Source: Selaginella moellendorffii
Taxonomy: Eukaryota > Plantae > Lycopodiophyta
Direction: 5' to 3'
NCBI RefSeq assembly: GCF_000143415.4
Contig: NW_003314296.1
Coordinates: forward strand, 1,277,858 to 1,341,857
DNA length: 64,000 nucleotides
Shown: positions 46,040 through 59,238 of the stretch, piece by piece
How positions within the stretch are numbered: the first letter of the stretch is position 1
Layout: each line of letters opens with the position of its first letter
Notes under the pieces: generated by a model
What the model was told of the DNA's origin: nothing
Databases searched by the model: none
The model's input: the letters and a program-made list of their open reading frames with translations, nothing else
Program-made: the position numbers and the translations under genes

Positions 46040-47340
46040 TCGCTGGAGGTGGAGCCAAAGTCGAGATCCATCCATTGCAATGCGATTGTTAAAGAGCTTC
46101 TCTAAAATCTCCCAGATTGAGGCCGCGGACCTGACAATCGCGGCAATGTCACTCCTGACAAGTAGACCAGAAAGAAACAACAACAAACAAACCTGATCGT
46201 TTCCACCAGTGGACCAAGTTCGCAAATTGACATCATCGCTGCTTCCTCGCATAGCGCACGAAGGTCGCTCCTAGAATGCCAAGCCGCTTCCCACAGTTAG
46301 AAAGCAATATCTGGGGAAAAGAACAACGTTACAATCTGTGTCTTTCACGAGCTTTTCCAAGTCAGAGCCTGTCAAAACCGAAGGATTCAGCGAGAAAGAG
46401 AGGAAAGAAAAAAAAAAAAGCAGAACTTTCCCACTTGACATGGGCTGTCCTTTGAGAAGATTTTGTAGGAGTGACCTGCGGCCATCAGAGTCAGGTAGTG
46501 GACGCATATTCTCTTTCACCTGGAGAGGAAAAGCAAGAGGAGAACTTAAAAAAAGGATCACGCGTTGGACTCACGAGACGCCTCCGTACTGGATCATCTA
46601 TTTCCACTGGCCTGTTAGTAGCACCTGTGACAAAAGAAATTCTCAGCTCAATGGCAATGAATATCGCGCGCTTTACCCATCACAAAAAACTTCGATCGTC
46701 CTTGATGGCTCAAAAATTTTCCGATTTGAGCCTGCGACCAGCATCATGTTCATTCGAACAAAATGCTGCCTATCTGGAAACGATTCGAACTCGAAGTTTC
46801 ATGTGGGAAGCCCAACCCACTGCGTAGCAACTAAGCATAAGCTCCACAGACTGATGATAGAACAAATCTTACCCATTTTGAAGTGAACGACGAAGAAAGA
46901 ATGCACTATAGGCCGCTCAGATGCCACTGCCTTGGCCAGCAAGCCTGTTAAAGTGGGCGTCAGGCAAAAAGCAACGCGGCTTTTGTTTAAAACCTGGAGC
47001 TGGTCTGCGAAAATCCCTGAAAAGATCACTCCTTTTTTGTAGGAAGAATAACCATCTCCATCAAAGCGTGCTTAAGTTTGCAAGTCCAGCTGCAAGAAGT
47101 AGCAATGTTCACGCAAGAAAAAAAAAAAGGACAAACACTAAGAAACATACCAATGATGGCCTGCCATAGACAATCTTACGTTTGATAGAAGTTGTCCGCC
47201 ATTGGAACGACGATCACCACAGACGAGCTAGAAAGAACAGTTTGTGGCTGTAAAGTTCCAGGCTTCCAAAATCAAAAGAGAAATCACAAATACCGGTCGA
47301 ACCTGAGTTGTGATCAAATTCTCCAGCCAGAGCTTCGCAT
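46040..47340 (-). pseudogene. Spastin/fidgetin-like AAA+ ATPase pseudogene (introns retained)
   Basis: AGL..KHALMEMVILPT..RSDLF..RRPA, GLLAKAVASE (Walker A deleted), NEHDAGRRLKSE, GATNRPVEIDDPVRRRL, PLPDSDGR, SGSDLRALCEEAAMM. Frameshifts present. Confidence 0.85.
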
Positions 47341-47360
47341 CGCTCATATTTTTCTAGGGC

Positions 47361-49790
47361 TCATATCAGTAGCGATCTCTTTGCCACTGAATCCGGCCAG
47401 AACGGCATGCTCTCGAGCAATTCCATTGCGAAATCCCTGCGCCCCGACCTCGCAAGAACGCCGAGAATGCAGCAGTAGTGCCGGATCGACGCCTGGAGCC
47501 CGAAATCCAGCGCCATTGACAAGAACTGGCGCCGGCTCTCCTCGATCGACCGCGGCGATCCCAGCACCGCCAAGAACGTCCCCCTGTCCGGCGCAAACCC
47601 TAGCAAGACCATCGCGTGGAGGAGCTCGATCGCGTTGCCAAAAGTGGAGCTTGCCGCCACAATGTACGTGCTCCACGACACGTCATCACGCTCTGGCATC
47701 CAAGCGAATATCTTCGCAGCCTGTTCTAAACTCCCAACCTGGGAATATGCCACCATCAGCGCATTCCATGCCACAAGATTCCTCTCTGGCATGTTGTGAA
47801 AGGCTTCCCTGGTAGCATCAAGCTCCCAATTCTGGGCAAAAGATGCCACCATTGTGGACCAAGAAATGGTGTCCAGCCATGGAATATAATCAAACACTCT
47901 TTTTGCTTGACAAATATTCCCAGCTTTAGAATATGCCTGTAACATTGCAGTGGAGCATATTACATTGTTTCTAAGAGGTATTTTATCATATATACATTGT
48001 GCCTCTTCAATGTTGCCTTTGGAGGAAAATGCTTGCAAAATGGATGACATTGAAGACATAGTATATTCTGGCACTTGATTGCAAAGGTGTAGAGCTTCTT
48101 CTTTGAAATTATTGGAGATGAGTGCCACAATAATCATGGCCCATGAGTGAATATCCCTCTCCCTCATGCTTTTGAATATGATCCTTGCCTCATGCATCTG
48201 CCTGGCTTCGGCATATGCTCCAATCATTAAGCTCCAAACTTTCAAATCATGCTCTGGCATATTCTTAAAAATAGTTTTTGCTCCCTCCAAATTCCCAGCC
48301 CTGGCATATCCTTGCAACATTGCAGTGTATGTTATAATGTTTTTTATGGGAATGTCCTCGAATATGTTTTCTGCTTCAATCATATGCCCACATTGGGTAT
48401 AAGCAGTGAGAAATGAGGTCCAAAGCACCACATCTGGATATTCAACCTTCAGAAACAAATCCATTGATTCCTCAAATTTGCCATTTTTCACTAAGCTCTG
48501 AAGCATTATTTCTAAACCATGCCCATCCCAAAGAGGCATTTGGTGAAAAACTTTCTTTGCTAGATCTAAGTGCTCACATTGACAATAAACTTGTAGCAAA
48601 GCATTCCAAGTTCCCAAAGTATGGCAAGGCATCTCCAGAAAAACACACTTTGCTGCTACCACGTCGCCCAGCTGAGAATATGCGCCAATAGCAGCATTGA
48701 AAGAAAGAATATTCACCTCTGGAAGCCGCTTAAACATTCTAACAGCTCCCTCTGGATACCCATTCTGGGAATATCCAGCTATGCATGTAGTCCACGACAC
48801 TATGTTCGTCAATGGCATCTGGGCAAAAAGATTCCGGGCATCCTCCAACCATCTGCAGCATATATAACCTGCTAGCATAGAATTCCACGTAACCAAATTA
48901 TGCCTAGGCATCTTACTATAGAGTTTCCAAGCTCGATCAAGATTCCCATTTGAGGCAAGTGCATCAAGCATAATATTCCAGGACACAATATTCCTCTCCG
49001 GCATAGAATCGAATATTCTTTTGACTGAAACAGAATCATTGCTTTGACTGTAAGCTGCAAGCATCACGTTGAACGACACTGTGTCTGGATGAGGAATTTT
49101 CTCAAACAAGGACTTGGCACTTTCAATATGCCCGTTTTGGGCATATGCTTGTACCATAAGATTCCAAGATACAACGTTCTTGTGGGCGATACCATCAAAC
49201 AATCCCTCTGCCTTTTCTAGAAATCCATTTTCCCCAAATGCTTGTATCAAAGCATTGCACGAAACTAGACTCTTCTCCGGCATTCTTTCAAAGTAAGACA
49301 CGGCGTCCTCCAAATGCCCAGCTTTGGCGAGCCCTGTGACGATCGAATTCCACGAAACTTGATTCGCATCGGGCATTTCCTCGAAGATCTTCTTTGCGGC
49401 GTCGAGATCCCCGCTCTGGACGAACAAGCTGATCATGTTGTTCCATAGAACAGGAGGTTTCTCTGGAGCCATGTCAAAGAGGCTCTTCGCTGCGTCGAAA
49501 TGACCGTTCTGGGCATAGGCCGAGATCATGGTGCTCCAGGAGAATGCGTTTGGCGCCTCCATCTTGTCGAAGATCGAGCGCGCGGATTCCACACAGCCGC
49601 ACTTGCCATACATGTCGATGAGAAGGTTGAGGAGGAACCTGTCAGATCGGAGCTGGCTCTGCGAGACCCAATCGTGAATTTGCCTTCCGGACAAGAGATC
49701 TCGATCAAACGCGCAGCCACGGATCACTTCCGCGAAATCCTGGACCCTGTGGAATTGATCCGCAGCGCCCGCGATCTGGATTGCATCCAT
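47361..49790 (-). CDS. PLS-class PPR protein (809 aa), ends in a truncated E region, no DYW
   Basis: Intronless ORF of tandem ~31-aa PPR motifs. N-terminal GRQIH..LIDMYGKCG; C-terminal HYCCILGVLARSG..SMPFWPD. Confidence 0.95.
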   Translation of the reverse strand: MDAIQIAGAADQFHRVQDFAEVIRGCAFDRDLLSGRQIHDWVSQSQLRSDRFLLNLLIDMYGKCGCVESARSIFDKMEAPNAFSWSTMISAYAQNGHFDAAKSLFDMAPEKPPVLWNNMISLFVQSGDLDAAKKIFEEMPDANQVSWNSIVTGLAKAGHLEDAVSYFERMPEKSLVSCNALIQAFGENGFLEKAEGLFDGIAHKNVVSWNLMVQAYAQNGHIESAKSLFEKIPHPDTVSFNVMLAAYSQSNDSVSVKRIFDSMPERNIVSWNIMLDALASNGNLDRAWKLYSKMPRHNLVTWNSMLAGYICCRWLEDARNLFAQMPLTNIVSWTTCIAGYSQNGYPEGAVRMFKRLPEVNILSFNAAIGAYSQLGDVVAAKCVFLEMPCHTLGTWNALLQVYCQCEHLDLAKKVFHQMPLWDGHGLEIMLQSLVKNGKFEESMDLFLKVEYPDVVLWTSFLTAYTQCGHMIEAENIFEDIPIKNIITYTAMLQGYARAGNLEGAKTIFKNMPEHDLKVWSLMIGAYAEARQMHEARIIFKSMRERDIHSWAMIIVALISNNFKEEALHLCNQVPEYTMSSMSSILQAFSSKGNIEEAQCIYDKIPLRNNVICSTAMLQAYSKAGNICQAKRVFDYIPWLDTISWSTMVASFAQNWELDATREAFHNMPERNLVAWNALMVAYSQVGSLEQAAKIFAWMPERDDVSWSTYIVAASSTFGNAIELLHAMVLLGFAPDRGTFLAVLGSPRSIEESRRQFLSMALDFGLQASIRHYCCILGVLARSGRRDFAMELLESMPFWPDSVAKRSLLI

Positions 49791-49802
49791 CGAGCCAAGC
49801 TC

Positions 49803-50087
49803 TCACGCGTGCTTGAAGAGCTTCATGCTGAGCCAGTGGAAGTAGACAGCCACGATCAAGACCGGGATCGTCATGGGAACCAGGAAGAAATAGTACCTGG
49901 GATCATCAAGAAACCCCAGATCTCGTCAAGAAACGATGAAGCGAAGGACTTACCACTCTCCCCGGATGAAATCCAGAGGCTTTGGCCCCGAAGATGGCAA
50001 GAGCTGCGCCAAGAACGCGAAGTAGACGATGGCGCCAAAGGAGCAAACGCTGAGCGCTAGAAGAAGAGCTCCGCCTTTCCCGCGCAT
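49803..50087 (-). CDS. PIG-Y: GPI-GlcNAc transferase subunit Y (PIG-Y/Eri1 family), 75 aa, exons 50087-49954 and 49896-49803
   Basis: Splicing a 57-nt GT-AG intron gives MRGKGGALLLALSVCSFGAIVYFAFLAQLLPSSGPKPLDFIRGEWYYFFLVPMTIPVLIVAVYFHWLSMKLFKHA*. It has two TM helices and the conserved plant PIG-Y ending YY..LVP.T.P...VAVYFHWLSMKLFKHA. Missing from the ORF track. Confidence 0.92.
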
Positions 50088-50423
50088 TGCTTCTGCCCTA
50101 AAAGTTTGAACTAACTCACCCAAGTTAGCGTTAACCTAACCTGGAATCCCTTTAAAACGATGCCTGGATCTTCGGATCCTTTTTTAATATATGAGGAGGA
50201 GGAAGCCCGTGTGTCTCGAGGGCTCTTGTCCACGCGCACACCCCAGCGCGCTTCTTGGAAGGTACGACTCAATCCATCTTGGCGCTCGCGCTCTCAGCGA
50301 TCAATCTCCTGGAATCGATTCCAGTCCACGCCGCCATGAATCGATCTGGTCGGTAATCCGATTTCGCGAGATTTCGTGCTCAACTCACCCTGTTCTTGAC
50401 AGCCGCGCAAGATTCTACCCGGA

Positions 50424-51463
50424 ATGAGAGATCGATCGGCAAAGGTATGGGAATCTCTTCCAAGAAGCCTAATGTAGGAACCAGGGGCCTGTCCAGGTCG
50501 TCGGCGCAGAGCTGCCGCGGAGCAGCGGCGGATAGAACAGCAGCGATGGGGGCAATTCGACGAAGACAAGGACGAGGATGGAGCTACGGACTTGATCCTT
50601 GCGCCGGCGCCGAGGCGGCGTAGCAGGCGTCCCTCGCGGCGAGAGCTGCTACAGGATGAGCTCCAACTGGCGAGGGATGAGCTCGAGATGGAGGCGCTGC
50701 GCTTGCGATACGGCGGATCTCACGAGCTCGATATTGCTCTAGGTAAGTTGTCGCAATTCGCAAGGTACTTCTTTCCCTCTTCTTTGCTTGTTTGGTTTTT
50801 TCTTTTCTTTGTTTGAGTGCCTTCTTTGCTTCCATTGATCAAGGTGGTTTGCCTTCCTTCGTCTATTTCGTTTTCCCTTCCCACGGTTCTTCTATTTGTT
50901 TTGAGAAAACTTCTCACGCTTCTCCTTGTTGGTTTGTCTTCCTTCATCTTTTTTCCTTTTCTCGAGAGAACTTCTCACGGTTTGAAGTGCAGCCTTGTCT
51001 CTCTCGTTGAGTGATGAACCGACTTACGCTCACGCGGAGGCTACTGCGGTTTCACTGGATATGTCGTATGAGGCAAGTAACTTCCCTTCTTTCTTTTCGC
51101 GTAGTTTTCTCGAGCTTGGGACTCACTCGTCTTCCACAGAGCCTCGTAGAACTGGAGAGCGTGAAGTGCGTGGCTTCGCCAGCTCTGGTGGCTTCCCTTG
51201 ACCGGACCGTCTTCTCAGATGGCGGCGGCGGCGGCTCCGCCGAGTAAGTCCCTCTGATCACTCTCACTCCTCTGACTTGGGCTTTCTTTGTGGCTTTTCT
51301 ATCCAGCTCTTGCGTCATCTGCCAGAACGAATACGTTGGCGGGGACAATCTCTCCCGCCTACCTTGCAAGCACGACGTTCACGAAGCTTGCGGCTCCGAG
51401 TGGCTGCTCAACTATTCAAAGCTCTGCCCCGTCTGCAAGGCGGACGTGACCATGGAGCATTGA
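50424..51463 (+). CDS. RING-H2 E3 ubiquitin ligase, multi-exon (5' end uncertain)
   Basis: Last exon CVICQNEYVGGDNLSRLPCKHDVHEACGSEWLLNYSKLCPVCK is a C3H2C3 RING. Upstream DMSYE-SLVEL motif is joined across a GC-AG intron 51073-51139. Stop TGA at 51461-51463. Confidence 0.85.
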
Positions 51464-51641
51464 TCTTTGTACAGTTCCAGGTAAAACTTCATACTCGATC
51501 GATCGAAACTAAGAGAACTTCTTCCTTTCTTGTCCCGCAGATAGCTACATTATTATTTCTCATTGATTCATCCAGCAACGATGAACAAGCTGTACATTCA
51601 ACCTTGTAAAAAATGGTTCTTCTTTCTTGTATTTAACTTGT

Positions 51642-53777
51642 ATGTCAAGGCAGCGTGTCTTATCGTGGAACATCGCTATAGCAGCCTATGCCCGAAATGG
51701 TCAGGTGGAGCTCGCAAAGGCGGTGTTTGACGAGAGCCCCCAGCGCGACGTGTCTTCGTGGAACACACTCGCGCAGGCCTATCTCCACCGCCAGGATTTC
51801 TCCTCCGCGAAAAGAGCCTTCGATGGAATGCCTTCTCACGACGTTGTGTCGCTCAACACGATGGTTTGTGGGTACGTTCGCGCTGGATTGGTCCAACACG
51901 GTGAGGATCTCTTCCGCTGGATGCCGCAGAGGAGCAGCGTCTCATGGAAGAGTTTGTGCCAAGCATATGCCCAAACTGGGCATCTAGAGAGAGCTAAGAA
52001 CTTGTTTGAGAAAATGCCACATTTAGATCTTTTGTCATGCACAAGCCTCTTGAGTGTATTTGCCCAAACGTGTCAAATGGAACAAGCAAAACTTATTTTT
52101 GATGTGATGTGTTTTAGAGATGTTCTGTGCTGGGTTGCCATGCTTGCAGCATATGCCAAAGGTGGGTATATGCTGATTTCTGAAGTGTGTTTTGCTTTGA
52201 TGCCTTGCTGGGACAATGTGGCGTTTACTGTTATGCTGGCGACATATTCCCGCTGTGGAAAGTTAACTAAAGCCTTGGATATCTTTCAGAAAATAGTCTC
52301 TCACGACGTTTATTCCTGGACTGCGCTGCTTTCGGCATATGCCATAAACGGGCATTTTGAGGAAGCGTATGGAATCTTCTCCTTTATGCCGTGCCGCGGG
52401 CCTGTTGCGTGGAACTCGATGATTTCTTCGTTCTCGCAAATGGGAAACTTGGAAGTGACGAAGTTTTTGTTTGAAGAGATGCCTCAGCTGGACATTGTGG
52501 CGTGGGCGTCGCTGGTCATGGCCTGTACCGAGGCACAACAAATGGGCTTGGCCCAAAACGTGTACGACCGGATGCCCCAGCACAATGCCGTGGTTTGTAC
52601 CTCTCTTTTCCAGGCATATGCCCGCTATGGGCATCTCAAAGAAGCCGAGAAAATGTACCACGGAATGTTCTACAAAGATGCTCTCTCGAGTAGAGTCTTG
52701 TTGAGTGCCTACATACGGAACGAAGAACCGGTTCTAGCGAAAGAGTTCTTTGACAAGATGTGGAAGAGGGATCAGTTTTCGTGGAACATTTTGCTGTGCG
52801 GCTTTGTGCACTGTGGCTGGCTAGACAAGGCCGAGATTCTGCTGCACGAAAAGATGCCAATGTACGGCATTGTGCCGATGAATGCCATTCTAGCCGGATA
52901 TTCCCAGCTTGGGAATCTAGAGAAAGTTAAGATGCTCTTTGATGCTCTTCCTTGTGGCAATGTTGTCTCGTGGTTTATTCTCATTGCTTGCCATGCCCAC
53001 AAAGGGGAATCTCTCCAAACAAAGCTCGTGTTTGGAAAGATGCCGCAGCTGAACATGGTGGCTTGGAATGCCTTGGGATTCGTCTGTGGTTTGACGAAGC
53101 AGCTGGAAGCAGCACGAGAAGTTTTCCATTCGATGCCGGGTCGTGATTTTCTCTCGTGGGCGAATTTTCTTGCAGCATCACTATCGAGTGGAGATCTTCC
53201 ATCGGCAAAGCGGGTCTTTGAAAAGATCCCGATGCTGGACATGGTTCTTTGGACGACTTTTGTTTTGGCTCATGCCCAAGCTGGGCATATTGGTGAAGCC
53301 AACACACTCTTTGCAAAGATGCCAGCCAGAGACTTGGTGGCTTGCAACGCCATGCTTGGAATCTATGCCCAGAATGGGTATTGCAGCGAGGCAACTGGCC
53401 TCCTCCAAGAGATGACCCTGGAAGGTTTGAGCGCCGATGGGACGAGCTTCACGAGCTTGCTCAGTGGATTTGGCCACTCGGGATTGCTCAGCGATGGATT
53501 GAGCTGCTTGGCGAGCATGGCTATTGACTTTGGTCTTGTTCCAGATCCCCAACACTACGGCAGTGTGATTGATCTCGTTGCCAGGAGTGGAGAGGTGAAA
53601 GATGCGAAGGGAATGCTGGCATGGTTTGGCCTTGCAAGCGATGTTGCCTGGAGGAGCTTGCTCGCTGCTTGCCGCATTCAGCTGGATGAAGAGAGCGCTC
53701 TGGCAGCTGCTAGCTCCCAAGAAGATCACAAGGAAAAGGCTCCCTATTCTTTGCTTGTAAACATTCTTGCAAGCTGA
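51642..53777 (+). CDS. PLS-class PPR protein (~711 aa) with E-like end, no DYW
   Basis: Intronless tandem PPR motifs; HYGSVIDLVARSG..VAWRSLLAACRIQ..PYSLLVNI. First ATG at 51642. Confidence 0.93.
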   Translation: MSRQRVLSWNIAIAAYARNGQVELAKAVFDESPQRDVSSWNTLAQAYLHRQDFSSAKRAFDGMPSHDVVSLNTMVCGYVRAGLVQHGEDLFRWMPQRSSVSWKSLCQAYAQTGHLERAKNLFEKMPHLDLLSCTSLLSVFAQTCQMEQAKLIFDVMCFRDVLCWVAMLAAYAKGGYMLISEVCFALMPCWDNVAFTVMLATYSRCGKLTKALDIFQKIVSHDVYSWTALLSAYAINGHFEEAYGIFSFMPCRGPVAWNSMISSFSQMGNLEVTKFLFEEMPQLDIVAWASLVMACTEAQQMGLAQNVYDRMPQHNAVVCTSLFQAYARYGHLKEAEKMYHGMFYKDALSSRVLLSAYIRNEEPVLAKEFFDKMWKRDQFSWNILLCGFVHCGWLDKAEILLHEKMPMYGIVPMNAILAGYSQLGNLEKVKMLFDALPCGNVVSWFILIACHAHKGESLQTKLVFGKMPQLNMVAWNALGFVCGLTKQLEAAREVFHSMPGRDFLSWANFLAASLSSGDLPSAKRVFEKIPMLDMVLWTTFVLAHAQAGHIGEANTLFAKMPARDLVACNAMLGIYAQNGYCSEATGLLQEMTLEGLSADGTSFTSLLSGFGHSGLLSDGLSCLASMAIDFGLVPDPQHYGSVIDLVARSGEVKDAKGMLAWFGLASDVAWRSLLAACRIQLDEESALAAASSQEDHKEKAPYSLLVNILAS

Positions 53778-55123: not shown

Positions 55124-57703
55124 TTAGTGACTACTTGATAGTGAATTTGCTAGAAGGGCCAGGGCTCCAGCTCTCTTTCCATCCAGCCTAGCGAGCACAT
55201 TGGTTCCTTTGATTAGAGTTTTAGGAGCCGCTCCCAGTAAACATGTCCACTCCAAGGAATCTGGCTCGAATGGCATGTTCTCGATTAGATCTCTCGCAGC
55301 TTCATAAGAGGCTGCTCTTCCCACTAAATCGACCATGCAAGAGTAGTGCTGCTTCAAAGCCACAAATCCGTAGCTTTCAACCAGCATGAAAAAATTCTTC
55401 CTTCCATTTTCAAGATCTCCCAAGCGACTGCACGCAATAAGAACTGATACAAAACACGTCTGGTCGGTCACGTCCAAGATTTTCGCTTCCTCAAATAAAG
55501 CAAACGCTTCAAGGTAGTGGCGGTTTTGGGCATATGCAGCAAGCATCGTGTTCCAGGTAACAATGTCTTTCTCAGGCATTTTGTCGAAAAACGCTTTTGC
55601 AAGAGCTATATCCCCAGATTGGGCATATGCAGCAAGCATGGCATTCCATGTTACTACAGTTTTCTCACCGCACATAGTGTGGAACATCCCAAAGGCAGTT
55701 TGTAGGTCTTCACAGGCTAGAATCTCATTGAAAGAAATAGAATCTTGCTGTGGCATGGAGTTGAATACAACCTTGGCTTGCTCGATATGCCCAGTTTGAA
55801 CATATCCACAAAGCATAGAATTCCAAGAAGATAACCCTCTATGCGGCATTTGCTCAAACATTGCCTTAGCGTCTTCAATGCGATTGTTCATTGCATAGGC
55901 ACTCAACATTGCATTCCAAGACACGATATCATGAACTGCCATTGAATCGAACAAGAGTTTTGCCGATTCAAGCTGACCTGTTCTTGAGTAGCCTGTGATC
56001 ATAGTCGTCCAGGCTACAAGGTCTGTCTCTGGAATTTGGTCAAAAATGCTCTTTGCTTCCTCCATCTCTCCTTCTTGGGCATATGCTCCTATCATGGTAG
56101 TCCAAACACAAAGGTCCTTAGTGGGCATAGCATCAAATATGATTCTAGCATTTTGAAAGTCACCTTTCTTAGAATAAGCCCATATAATGATTGCCCATGA
56201 AACTAAATTCCATTGTGGCATTGTATCAAAGATATTGGAGGTTTTCTCAAAGTTTTTCCCTTGTGAGAAGGCCATTAGCATTGCATTGTAAGAGCTCAAG
56301 TCCTTCTCTACCATTCTAAGAAACAAAAACTCACATTCTAGATAATACCCATGCCGGGCATATGCTAAGAGCATTGTATTTGCAGATAAAAGGTCCCACT
56401 CTGGCATTGTGTTAAAAATGTGGCTTGCATAATCAAAATCATTTGCTTGATTATAGCATGACAGCAAACACGTCCACGAAACTAAGTCATATTGAGGCAT
56501 ATCCTCAAATAAACGACGAGCTTCATCAATATATCCCATTTGGGCATATGCTTTCAACAAGGTGGTATAAGACGTCATATCCTTCCAATGTAAATCCTCA
56601 AAAATCTTCTTGGCCTCGTCAAAATTTTCAGAAGCATAGAAGGCAAGCATGGCATTCCATGAGATAATAGAATGCTCTGGTAGTTCACAGAGCATTCGCT
56701 TGGCTTGCAACGTATCACCTTCGCTTACATAAGCAGAAAAAAGAGTGATCCATGACACACAATCATGGGTTGGAATCGAGTCTACAAGTTTTTCTGCCTT
56801 TTCAATATGTCCAGTTTCAATAAATACAGAGAGCAGAAGCGTAGAAGAAACTAAGTCGATCTGTGGCATATTCACGTATATGCTCTCAGCAAAGGATACA
56901 TTTTCTTCTTGGCAGTACCCTTCCAGAATTGTGTTCCAAGATACAAAATCTTGATACCGCATTGTGTCAAAGAAATTTCTGGCCTTTTGCATTTGCCCGG
57001 ATTTGGTAAATGCTCGTAAAACGATGTTGCTTGATATCAAGTCAAACACAGGCATTTTGTTGTAGAGGGCTTCCTTTTCCGGTACTTCTTCAGAATTGTA
57101 CGCTGAAAGTATCAACGTCCAAGAAACTAAGTCGTGAACCGGCATCCTCTCAAACAGAAATTTGGCATTTACCAGATGCCCGTCACGGGCATATACAGAA
57201 AGCATGGAGTTCCAGCTCACAAGGTTTCGTTCGGTCATTTCGTTGAACACTAGCTCTGCCTTTTGTACCTCGCCATGTTTTGCATACAGTGTGAGAAGTA
57301 TATTGTGGCAGACAACGTCCCACATTGGCATACGAGCAAATATTCTCTTAGATTCTCTGATATGCCCATGCCGGGCATATGCCTCGAGCAGCACTGTCCA
57401 CGAGACAATGCCGGGTTGTGGAATCTCCTCAAAGAGAAGCCTCGCATTTCTAAGATCGTCATTTTTGCAGTAAGCTAGGAGGATGGCGTGCCAGGAAAAG
57501 GAATCTTTCGATCCCAGGGAATCAAAGACGGCTCGTGCGTGGCTAGGCGAGCCGCAGTGGCCGTACGCTTGAATCAGCTTGTTGGCAGCGAAGAGATTGT
57601 GTGGAAGAAGCGATTTGATCCGCTCGTGAATCTCTCTCGCATCAACCAGAGTTTTGCAGCGCTCGATCTCGGCGAACAAATCCCGGTGAGAACTTGGAGC
57701 CAT
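55124..57703 (-). CDS. PLS-class PPR protein (~859 aa) with degenerate E domain, no DYW
   Basis: Intronless; AREIHERI..NKLIQAYGHCGS; HYSCMVDLVGRA..MPFEPDSLEWTCLLGA. First in-frame ATG at 57703. Confidence 0.95.
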   Translation of the reverse strand: MAPSSHRDLFAEIERCKTLVDAREIHERIKSLLPHNLFAANKLIQAYGHCGSPSHARAVFDSLGSKDSFSWHAILLAYCKNDDLRNARLLFEEIPQPGIVSWTVLLEAYARHGHIRESKRIFARMPMWDVVCHNILLTLYAKHGEVQKAELVFNEMTERNLVSWNSMLSVYARDGHLVNAKFLFERMPVHDLVSWTLILSAYNSEEVPEKEALYNKMPVFDLISSNIVLRAFTKSGQMQKARNFFDTMRYQDFVSWNTILEGYCQEENVSFAESIYVNMPQIDLVSSTLLLSVFIETGHIEKAEKLVDSIPTHDCVSWITLFSAYVSEGDTLQAKRMLCELPEHSIISWNAMLAFYASENFDEAKKIFEDLHWKDMTSYTTLLKAYAQMGYIDEARRLFEDMPQYDLVSWTCLLSCYNQANDFDYASHIFNTMPEWDLLSANTMLLAYARHGYYLECEFLFLRMVEKDLSSYNAMLMAFSQGKNFEKTSNIFDTMPQWNLVSWAIIIWAYSKKGDFQNARIIFDAMPTKDLCVWTTMIGAYAQEGEMEEAKSIFDQIPETDLVAWTTMITGYSRTGQLESAKLLFDSMAVHDIVSWNAMLSAYAMNNRIEDAKAMFEQMPHRGLSSWNSMLCGYVQTGHIEQAKVVFNSMPQQDSISFNEILACEDLQTAFGMFHTMCGEKTVVTWNAMLAAYAQSGDIALAKAFFDKMPEKDIVTWNTMLAAYAQNRHYLEAFALFEEAKILDVTDQTCFVSVLIACSRLGDLENGRKNFFMLVESYGFVALKQHYSCMVDLVGRAASYEAARDLIENMPFEPDSLEWTCLLGAAPKTLIKGTNVLARLDGKRAGALALLANSLSSSH

Positions 57704-57732
57704 TACTTTTCTGTGATTGAGTGGGTCATGAC

Positions 57733-59238
57733 ATGATCCACGCTGTTCTTCCAAGCTCTAGGGACGAAATCGCGGCAGCCATCCGGCACTGTGGAGACAG
57801 CAATGATGTGTTCGCCGGCAGGAAAATCCACGCCCAGATCCACCTCTCCCGACAGCACCGGGAGGATCTCTTCCTCGCCAATCTCCTCGTCCAGATGTAC
57901 GGCAGGTGGGGCGACACCCGTACGGCACTCGAGACCTTTCGCGCCATCCCCGACAAGAACCTCTTCTCGTATACCATCATGATGACTGCCTACCTGGACA
58001 GCACCGACATCGCGGGCTGTAAGCGAATATTCGATGGCATGCCCCTGCACGATCTAGTGTCCTGGAACGCCATGGTTACTGCATATGCCCAAAACGGGTA
58101 TATTCTAGAGTCTCGGCAAATGCTTTTTTTTATGCCGGAATGGGACGTCTCTTCGTGGAATTCTCTGCTATCGGGGACGGCACAAAACGGGAATATACGT
58201 GAGGTACAAGAGGTTTACGGTATGATGCCGTACCGTGACGTTGTGACGGAGAGTACGCTCTTGGCAGCATATGCCCATAAAGGGTATTTGGAGTTGGCGG
58301 AGGAACTTTTTGAGAGTATGACGGTCCGGAACATGGTGTCGTATACGTCCATGGTTGCTGCGTACGGGAAAAGTGGGATGATTCAGAGAGCGAAATCTAT
58401 GTTTGATGTGATGCCAGAGAGGAATCTCGTTTCGTGGACTGTGATGATTTGTGTGTTTGCGGAGAATGGGCTCCCAGAGCAAGCAAAGCGCACATATGAT
58501 CTAATGCCGTGCCAAGATTGTGTTGCTTTGGTTGCGGTGCTGGATTCTTATGCGCAGATCGGAGACACAGTTCGTGCCAAAGAGCTGTTTGATTCAATGC
58601 CCAAGAAGAGCTTGATCGCGTCAAATGCATTGATGAAAGCACACGCTCTAGCTGGGGACCTGGATGGAGCGAAAAGTTGTCTGGAGCAGATGCCCGAATG
58701 GAGTGAATCTTCCTTTAACTTTTTCATTGAGTTGTATGGAAGGCATGGGTTTGTTCTTGAGGCTAAATCCATGTTTGATATCATGCCCTTAAAGAGCGTC
58801 ATATCATGGACAAACATGACAGTTGCATTTGCCTCGAATGGACGTGTAGAAACCGCTTTTAAGCTCTTTGATGGGATGTTTGAGAAAAACAAAGTGATAT
58901 GGAACACAATCCTCCATGGATTTGCGCTTAATAACCACAGGACAGAGAGTCTTGAGTTGTTTGTTAAAATGGTGATTGAGGGATTTGATCCAGATGAAAT
59001 ATCTTTCAACAGTGTTCTTAGTGCTTGCAATCACACTGGGAATACTAAATTGGGTTTGGATTACTTGATCTCAATGGAAGTGGACTTTGGATTGAAAGTA
59101 ATGTTAGAGCATTTTCATTGTGTCATGGACCTATTAGGGAGGGTAGGCAGGCTTGATGAAATTGAACAATTGTTCAATTGTATGCCATCTGCACCAAATA
59201 GTATCACATGGACTATTTTCTTAGCATCTTATCATTAG
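57733..59238 (+). CDS. PLS-class PPR protein (~501 aa), stops at the start of the E domain
   Basis: GRKIHAQI..NLLVQMYGRWG; HFHCVMDLLGRVGRL..MPSAPNSITWTIFL. First in-frame ATG at 57733. Confidence 0.95.
   Translation: MIHAVLPSSRDEIAAAIRHCGDSNDVFAGRKIHAQIHLSRQHREDLFLANLLVQMYGRWGDTRTALETFRAIPDKNLFSYTIMMTAYLDSTDIAGCKRIFDGMPLHDLVSWNAMVTAYAQNGYILESRQMLFFMPEWDVSSWNSLLSGTAQNGNIREVQEVYGMMPYRDVVTESTLLAAYAHKGYLELAEELFESMTVRNMVSYTSMVAAYGKSGMIQRAKSMFDVMPERNLVSWTVMICVFAENGLPEQAKRTYDLMPCQDCVALVAVLDSYAQIGDTVRAKELFDSMPKKSLIASNALMKAHALAGDLDGAKSCLEQMPEWSESSFNFFIELYGRHGFVLEAKSMFDIMPLKSVISWTNMTVAFASNGRVETAFKLFDGMFEKNKVIWNTILHGFALNNHRTESLELFVKMVIEGFDPDEISFNSVLSACNHTGNTKLGLDYLISMEVDFGLKVMLEHFHCVMDLLGRVGRLDEIEQLFNCMPSAPNSITWTIFLASYH

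Follow-up and report, generated by a model that had tools for sequence, protein, structure and literature searches.

How a PPR gene that begins almost directly behind the stop codon of another gene comes to be expressed is the question raised by a 64,000-nt stretch of the Selaginella moellendorffii (spikemoss) genome (hereafter the window; source scaffold, GL377600.1). On the minus strand, a spliced PIG-Y ORF is followed by an intronless PPR ORF. The original prediction placed the PPR ATG 12 nt past the PIG-Y TGA, on the same strand and in the same frame; we confirmed these coordinates and found the joint to be identical on both haplotypes. Haplotype 2 (GL377642.1), which we reached via the neighboring DUF868 allele, is 2.5% apart from that of the window. 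The features of the unit, in window positions, are as follows.

49954 to 50087, minus strand: PIG-Y exon 1, 134 nt, with the ATG at 50087 and the first hydrophobic segment; covered by RNA contigs of runs X4 (to 50065) and X1 (to 50030).
49897 to 49953, minus strand: PIG-Y intron, 57 nt, GT..AG; its splice joint is present in RNA contigs of X1 and X4.
49803 to 49896, minus strand: PIG-Y exon 2, 94 nt, with the TGA stop at 49805-49803; matches Pfam PF15159; identical in haplotype 2.
49791 to 49802, minus strand: inter-ORF spacer, 12 nt; identical in haplotype 2.
47361 to 49790, minus strand: intronless PLS-class PPR, 809 aa, with the ATG at 49790 and the stop at 47361; intact on both haplotypes.
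46820 to 47360, minus strand: spliced 3′ UTR with four introns, whose joints occur in three or four of the four runs.
47302-47248, 47150-47090, 46993-46945 and about 46872-46820, minus strand: the 3′ UTR introns; splice sites checked, the ends of the fourth inferred.

PIG-Y was searched exon by exon, and the spliced model (a 75-aa product of a 285-bp gene) was translated locally for residue counts and haplotype comparison. Exon 2 alone matched Pfam PF15159 with an E-value of 6.8e-11 and 43.3 bits (curated gathering cut-off, 25); exon 1 alone gave no Pfam match. A protein search with exon 2 returned 78 proteins, nearly all of them homologues of PIG-Y in plants or other eukaryotes. The predicted protein has the plant C-terminal YFHWLSMKLFKHA end and two hydrophobic segments, at about residues 5-31 and 45-71 according to its hydropathy profile. 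Since it shares the KLFKHA C-terminus at which most plant homologues stop, the TGA is the true end of PIG-Y. Given the Pfam match, the 78 homologous proteins and an intron spliced out in RNA contigs from two studies, the hidden ORF that had been predicted is, as judged by homology, a real and well-supported PIG-Y gene of the GPI-anchor family, although neither haplotype has it among its called genes. Its role as a subunit of the ER GPI-GlcNAc transferase would be that assigned to the family.

The downstream ORF has an L-like motif at its N-terminus, then a tandem array of about 20 S motifs of 31 aa each, and finally a tail resembling P2-L2-S2 and an E1 that is cut short, according to motif classes assigned by eye rather than with dedicated PPR HMMs. 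The 31-residue period extends over about 20 motifs, and the fifth and last residues are mostly canonical (NN, ND, NS, TN, TD, SD or SN). A monotypic S-array is typical of Selaginella editing factors (PMC8809517), and the PPR resembles these S-array PLS proteins in its tandem 31-aa S motifs, P2-L2-S2, partial E1 and canonical fifth and last residues. Unlike them, it lacks a DYW, has a shortened E1 and carries an acidic N-terminus (7 acidic residues and 1 Ser/Thr in the first 40) that appears unlike a transit peptide, as read from these counts. A domain search found neither an E_motif nor a DYW match. Because the ORF ends inside E1, without a DYW, the protein could act only as a specificity factor and not as a deaminase. 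Several PPR paralogues likewise begin close to their first motif.

The nearest database relatives of the full PPR were paralogues; since the best of these was only about 30% identical, the PPR is not a fresh duplicate. Its first 184 residues gave one match in the protein search, at 32% identity. Between haplotypes the ORF carries 60 substitutions, with 25 synonymous and 31 nonsynonymous codons, and the resulting pN/pS of 0.33-0.45 (P = 7e-5 to 3e-3 against neutrality) indicates that the PPR is under purifying selection. As it is intact on two haplotypes, has an excess of synonymous changes and retains mostly canonical code residues, its translation from some RNA is very likely. The copy was probably retroposed, to judge from its lack of introns, from lycophyte PPR expansion, which has been attributed to retroposition (PMC13386178), and from a vertebrate precedent (PMC13303939); no insertion hallmarks were found at the locus.

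From which RNA, then, is the PPR translated? We analyzed Logan contigs from four runs of four studies (X1, X4, X11 and X13) over positions 46700-52600. The RNA nature of these runs was a guess that their spliced joints bear out. Contig 23 of X4 comprises 50065-49951 joined to 49893-49240, so that the PIG-Y intron is spliced out and the sequence then continues 550 nt into the PPR; contig 3 of X1 contains the same spliced PIG-Y-to-PPR join, and contig 18 of X13 runs continuously from 49897 to 48610. Because a haplotype SNP at 50066 adjoins the 5′ end of the X4 contig, this end is probably a break in the assembly graph and not a 5′ end of the RNA. The six differences in X1 all fall inside the PPR, showing that the PIG-Y stop, the spacer and the PPR AUG are intact in RNA.

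Neither individual molecules nor RNA ends can be seen in de Bruijn contigs, and none of those listed spans the whole unit. Contig depth, which was corrected for heterozygous k-mers and is weak evidence when used for ranking, stayed broadly similar between PIG-Y and the distant 3′ exons (12/9/13 in X4, 38/18/24/33 in X1, 116/106/143/164 in X11 and 8/17/13/13 in X13). In the plus-strand pair that mirrors this arrangement, depth dropped 3-15-fold from a RING gene into the PPR behind it. No AU-rich 3′-end zone was found within 500 nt behind the PIG-Y stop: AT content was 36-50% in all ten 50-nt bins, with no AATAAA, and AT content behind the RING stop was 66-72%. The claim that the PPR is the second cistron of the PIG-Y transcript was therefore borne out as far as co-transcription, which is supported by the spliced contigs from two studies and by the lack of an AU-rich zone; it falls short of proof, as contigs do not represent individual molecules and would look no different if transcription started inside exon 1. 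Either way, PIG-Y mRNA has to extend into the PPR ORF and the PPR leader has to overlap PIG-Y.

At the other end of the unit, the first 3′ UTR intron starts 58 nt past the PPR stop, and the ends of the fourth were inferred because allele differences shift its reported joint. We considered a third cistron in the 3′ exons, where a 77-codon ORF is interrupted in the allele of the window and becomes readable with a 1-nt deletion near 47033 that is present in all four runs and in haplotype 2. Its pieces had no Pfam match, and we treated the region as UTR.

These data are consistent with two main readings. We lean, with modest confidence, toward the reading in which the PPR is a retroposed second ORF on the PIG-Y mRNA that is reached by leaky scanning. 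An intronless PPR copy, probably generated by retroposition, would have settled directly behind the PIG-Y stop and would now use the PIG-Y promoter. The main mRNA would start shortly upstream of the PIG-Y AUG, lose the PIG-Y intron, and continue through the whole PPR into the four-intron 3′ UTR, so that one message probably makes both proteins. PIG-Y would be translated first, while a minority of 40S subunits would pass the PIG-Y AUG, as well as two more in the same frame, before initiating at the PPR AUG 240 nt on, by leaky scanning and perhaps some re-initiation. The outcome would be a low level of separate PPR protein, enough for an organellar RNA-binding specificity factor.

The other reading, a substantial possibility but short of a probable one, is that overlapping single-protein messages are made in a compact genome: PPR RNAs would start inside PIG-Y, downstream of its AUG, and PIG-Y RNAs would end inside the PPR ORF or carry the PPR as an untranslated, NMD-prone tail. 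The surroundings of the unit comprise the following features.

50088 to 50170, no strand assigned: putative divergent promoter and short 5′ UTR zone, probably extending from the PIG-Y ATG to the furthest-upstream RING RNA.
50170 to 51630, plus strand: divergent RING-H2 gene, 213 aa, with a 3′ UTR intron at 51481-51540; 3′ end approximate.
51642 to 53777, plus strand: another intronless PPR, downstream of RING, that served as an internal comparison.

RING RNA begins at 50170 on the plus strand (X13, contig 19), only 83 nt from the PIG-Y AUG, and the PIG-Y leader is therefore probably short. A possible 43-nt 5′ UTR intron at 50140-50098 was absent among the joints listed. Further along the window, the PPR ORFs at 55124-57703 and 57733-59238 are oriented head to head with 29 nt between their start codons (in haplotype 2, 24 nt), which implies either that their promoters lie in each other's coding sequence or that the real starts are further in. 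Tight spacing of this kind favors overlapping messages, and it recurs in six other loci of the S. moellendorffii genome, chosen around PPR paralogues, where gaps taken from the annotation measured 63, 79, 134, 140 and 154 nt between same-strand genes and 38 nt head to head. The original prediction had argued that 12 nt leave no room for a promoter, a 3′ UTR or a poly(A) signal. For the promoter this argument is weak, given such packing genome-wide, but the spacer is indeed shorter than every measured gap: among 15 annotated same-strand gaps the minimum was 63 nt and the median 234 nt.

Some of the RNA data also point to overlapping messages. In X11, the deepest run, the PPR contig begins at 49822 without PIG-Y coverage upstream, which may reflect filtering, a variant or an internal start, and in X1 the depth of the 5′ contig exceeds that of the rest by a factor of about 1.1-2. 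Arabidopsis offers parallels, since start-site choice excludes upstream ORFs from most transcripts (bioRxiv 10.1101/2024.04.25.591216) and the second gene has its own start site at 202 of 271 readthrough loci (PMC9768141). Against separate messages, however, depth shows no clear step and the vicinity of the PIG-Y stop lacks an AU-rich poly(A) zone. Moreover, the RNA that enters the PPR in X1 and X4 has the spliced PIG-Y junction, so an internal start would have to lie within the 134-nt exon 1 or coexist with a through-running PIG-Y RNA.

Leaky scanning finds support in the C at +4 of the PIG-Y AUG, which has G, the commonest base, at −3. Two internal in-frame AUGs precede the PPR AUG, one of which (Met69) has A at −3, and the PPR AUG itself has the rare T at −3. 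Three AUGs would thus have to be passed, and the −3 bases of the PIG-Y AUG and Met69 also argue against leaky scanning. There is no out-of-frame AUG between the PIG-Y AUG and the PPR AUG, a depletion that is not significant (0.57 expected, P(0) = 0.52). A strong NMD trigger is expected from the 2.9 kb and four splice junctions behind the PIG-Y stop, and little re-initiation would be expected across 12 nt once 75 codons have been translated. In Arabidopsis readthrough transcripts, the second ORF was rarely translated in 7/8, and such RNAs are NMD targets (PMC9768141). It is because of the expected inefficiency of re-initiation, and because Arabidopsis second ORFs are rarely translated and NMD-sensitive, that we keep overlapping messages as a serious contender beside the bicistronic reading.

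Two further routes to a PPR protein were considered. The first, which had been predicted as a rare event giving a membrane-anchored PPR, is readthrough of the stop codon to yield an 889-residue PIG-Y-PPR fusion in the ER membrane. The two ORFs are indeed in frame with a single UGA between them, and exon 2 with its UGA, the intron, the spacer and the PPR AUG are identical on both haplotypes, exon 1 differing at two bases. The shared frame is nevertheless a weak argument, being a one-in-three chance. Known leaky stop contexts are UGA-C and CARYYA, and the UGA-G found here is a non-leaky context. The stop also lies at the conserved PIG-Y C-terminus, none of the 78 homologues is fused to PPR repeats, and an ER anchor would hold an organellar RNA factor away from its targets. 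A hairpin just behind the PPR AUG, considered as an aid to initiation or readthrough, had a z-score of −2.2 in the window but was lost in haplotype 2 (−0.5). We therefore regard readthrough as very improbable, and this part of the original prediction found no support.

The second route, to which we give marginally less credence still, is alternative splicing around the PIG-Y coding sequence, such as a joint between a donor near 50140 and an acceptor late in exon 2; the shared promoter would then also give rise to a monocistronic PPR mRNA. The start of the X11 contig coincides with an AG (49822-49821), and position 50140 has a donor-like CAG/GTTAGG, but no such joint was among those listed and the acceptor would be an AAG without a pyrimidine tract. 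Visual inspection of the three nearby acceptors gave no in-frame splice from PIG-Y exon 1 to the PPR: each leads to a stop or a frameshift.

The bicistronic reading would make PIG-Y/PPR a probable, though unproven, bicistron working like those of green algae and like Arabidopsis CDC26-TTM3. The CDC26-TTM3 pair is conserved across plants, unlike PIG-Y/PPR, which is missing from both bryophytes checked; it also has a demonstrated functional link, whereas the products of PIG-Y and the PPR work in different compartments. The two cases are alike in that a small conserved gene lies upstream of a larger unrelated ORF in a land-plant mRNA (CDC26-TTM3 is described in PMC9768141). The nuclear bicistrons of green algae share with the spikemoss unit a small upstream ORF, a short spacer, few AUGs before ORF 2 and unrelated products (PMC7896298, PMC11892635), as well as a short leader, which is probable for PIG-Y/PPR. 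The spacer of algal REX1S/REX1B, for example, is 14 nt (PMC7896298, PMC11892635), and few AUGs and short leaders mark the algal bicistrons that use leaky scanning (PMC11892635). As in the nuclear bicistrons defined in PMC7896298, there are two separate ORFs, each conserved or under selection. The algal cases differ in being documented by Iso-Seq, H3K4me3, poly(A) mapping and peptides, whereas PIG-Y/PPR is known from short-read contigs, and many of them are conserved across species, whereas the conservation of PIG-Y/PPR is that of two haplotypes.

The NMD-suppressed readthrough transcripts of Arabidopsis (PMC9768141) are similar in that tightly spaced neighbors are co-transcribed, PPR genes are often involved and NMD features are present. 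This class is a good fit for the RING-to-PPR join through the 3′ UTR intron on the plus strand. By contrast, the Arabidopsis transcripts are a minor form beside monocistronic mRNAs, whereas the through-running PIG-Y/PPR RNA looks like the main form, and PPRs are noted there among the first genes, with ORF 2 rarely translated, whereas the spikemoss PPR is second.

In vertebrates, STREMI-SLC35A4 and human PYURF-PIGY likewise place independently evolved genes on one mRNA, with an intronless downstream ORF ascribed to retroposition beside an active small gene, and intronless second ORFs are typical of vertebrate bicistrons born in this way (PMC13303939). The human pair had been cited as a precedent, but the analogy fits loosely: PIG-Y is the downstream ORF in human and the upstream ORF in spikemoss. 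Since the human partner is also unrelated to PPRs, PIG-Y, if bicistronic in both lineages, would have become so by convergence.

Green algae commonly have nuclear mRNAs that encode two proteins, but hardly any have been documented in land plants, in which most readthrough RNA is degraded and translation of its second ORF is rare. A literature search, which most subscription journals lay outside, returned no report of bicistronic protein-coding pairs in Selaginella. If the PPR is made from PIG-Y mRNA, promoterless PPR retrocopies would have had a way to become expressed in a lineage whose PPR genes number in the thousands and whose organellar editing is extreme. More speculatively, and on balance doubtfully, a real share of S. 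moellendorffii nuclear genes may be expressed from true bicistronic mRNAs, as in green algae, with part of the PPR family having spread behind the stops of small housekeeping genes, its members translated as second ORFs in spite of NMD features. One clean case of such spread would then be PIG-Y/PPR.

The PIG-Y/PPR pair is kept on both S. moellendorffii haplotypes and was absent in the two bryophytes, Riccia and Ceratodon, where the gene next to PIG-Y lies 4.5 kb and 658 nt away, respectively, and is in neither case a PPR. A protein search with PIG-Y exon 1 gave no match among data with little Selaginella, and the junction pattern was not found in metagenome contigs within the limits of that search; neither result is proof of absence. 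Regardless of bicistrony, the analysis supplies the missing annotation of the spikemoss PIG-Y gene, whose intron lies at the plant-type position, the same as in the Riccia and Ceratodon genes.

The PPR gene behind PIG-Y has a counterpart on the opposite strand, where the RING-H2 gene adjacent to PIG-Y is itself followed by a PPR:

Window 50170-53777, + strand: RING-H2 gene and 711-aa PPR, the mirror pair of PIG-Y/PPR

The distance from the RING stop to the start of the 711-aa PPR is 178 nt, and the 3′ UTR of the RING-H2 gene contains an intron (51481-51540, +). In a contig assembled from the presumed RNA run X11, this intron was spliced out and the sequence continued 700 nt into the 711-aa PPR. 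Because contig depth fell 3-15-fold from RING-H2 into the PPR, and because scanning ribosomes would meet two AUGs in other frames ahead of the PPR start codon, the RING-to-PPR RNA looks like minor readthrough. The 711-aa ORF is unbroken on both haplotypes, which differ at 26 synonymous and 31 nonsynonymous codons. Intron 5 of the RING gene (window 51073-51139, +) uses a GC donor (GC..AG), in frame to yield the annotated 213-aa product.

The intronless 809-aa PPR is followed by a spliced trailer:

Window 47360-46820, − strand: 3′ UTR with four introns, downstream of the 809-aa PPR

These introns measure 49-61 nt each, the first lying 58 nt past the stop, and their arrangement is an NMD-type layout. 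The window carries one base more in a homopolymer run (47033-47038) than haplotype 2 or any of the four RNA runs; a rare allele may explain this, or an error in the assembly. Within the ORF, GC3 is 0.37-0.44 in the middle (49100-48000) versus 0.72 and 0.82 at the ends, a pattern for which separate origins of the S-motif array and the termini are one possible reason; overall GC likewise falls within the neighbouring PPR ORF. The haplotype 2 annotation gives the 809-aa PPR gene a range (L010 3001-11714) that starts within the upstream PPR, 6 kb off, and spans two genes on the opposite strand. Paralogous reads probably produced this long range as an annotation artefact, the alternative being a rare PPR-to-PPR splice.

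Two further PPR ORFs, of 859 aa (−) and 501 aa (+), start head to head with 29 nt between them (window 57703-57733; 24 nt in haplotype 2), and therefore neither has an intergenic promoter or 5′ UTR. Close annotated genes are not confined to PPRs, as non-PPR genes lie 38 nt apart head to head (L012 4374-4413) and 63 nt apart from stop to start (L005 1854-1918) at two other S. moellendorffii loci.

In the moss Ceratodon purpureus, PIG-Y is also followed by an ORF, as judged from sequence only:

L003 5922-6581, Ceratodon purpureus: PIG-Y-to-SCD2-like interval

The intronless 562-aa SCD2-like ORF starts 658 nt after PIG-Y. If a candidate GT..AG intron (about L003 5958-6509) were removed, the PIG-Y stop and the SCD2-like start would lie about 105 nt apart with no ATG between them, and the pair is thus a possible independent PIG-Y bicistron. 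Telo-box-like motifs near L003 6455 could instead be the sign of a separate promoter.
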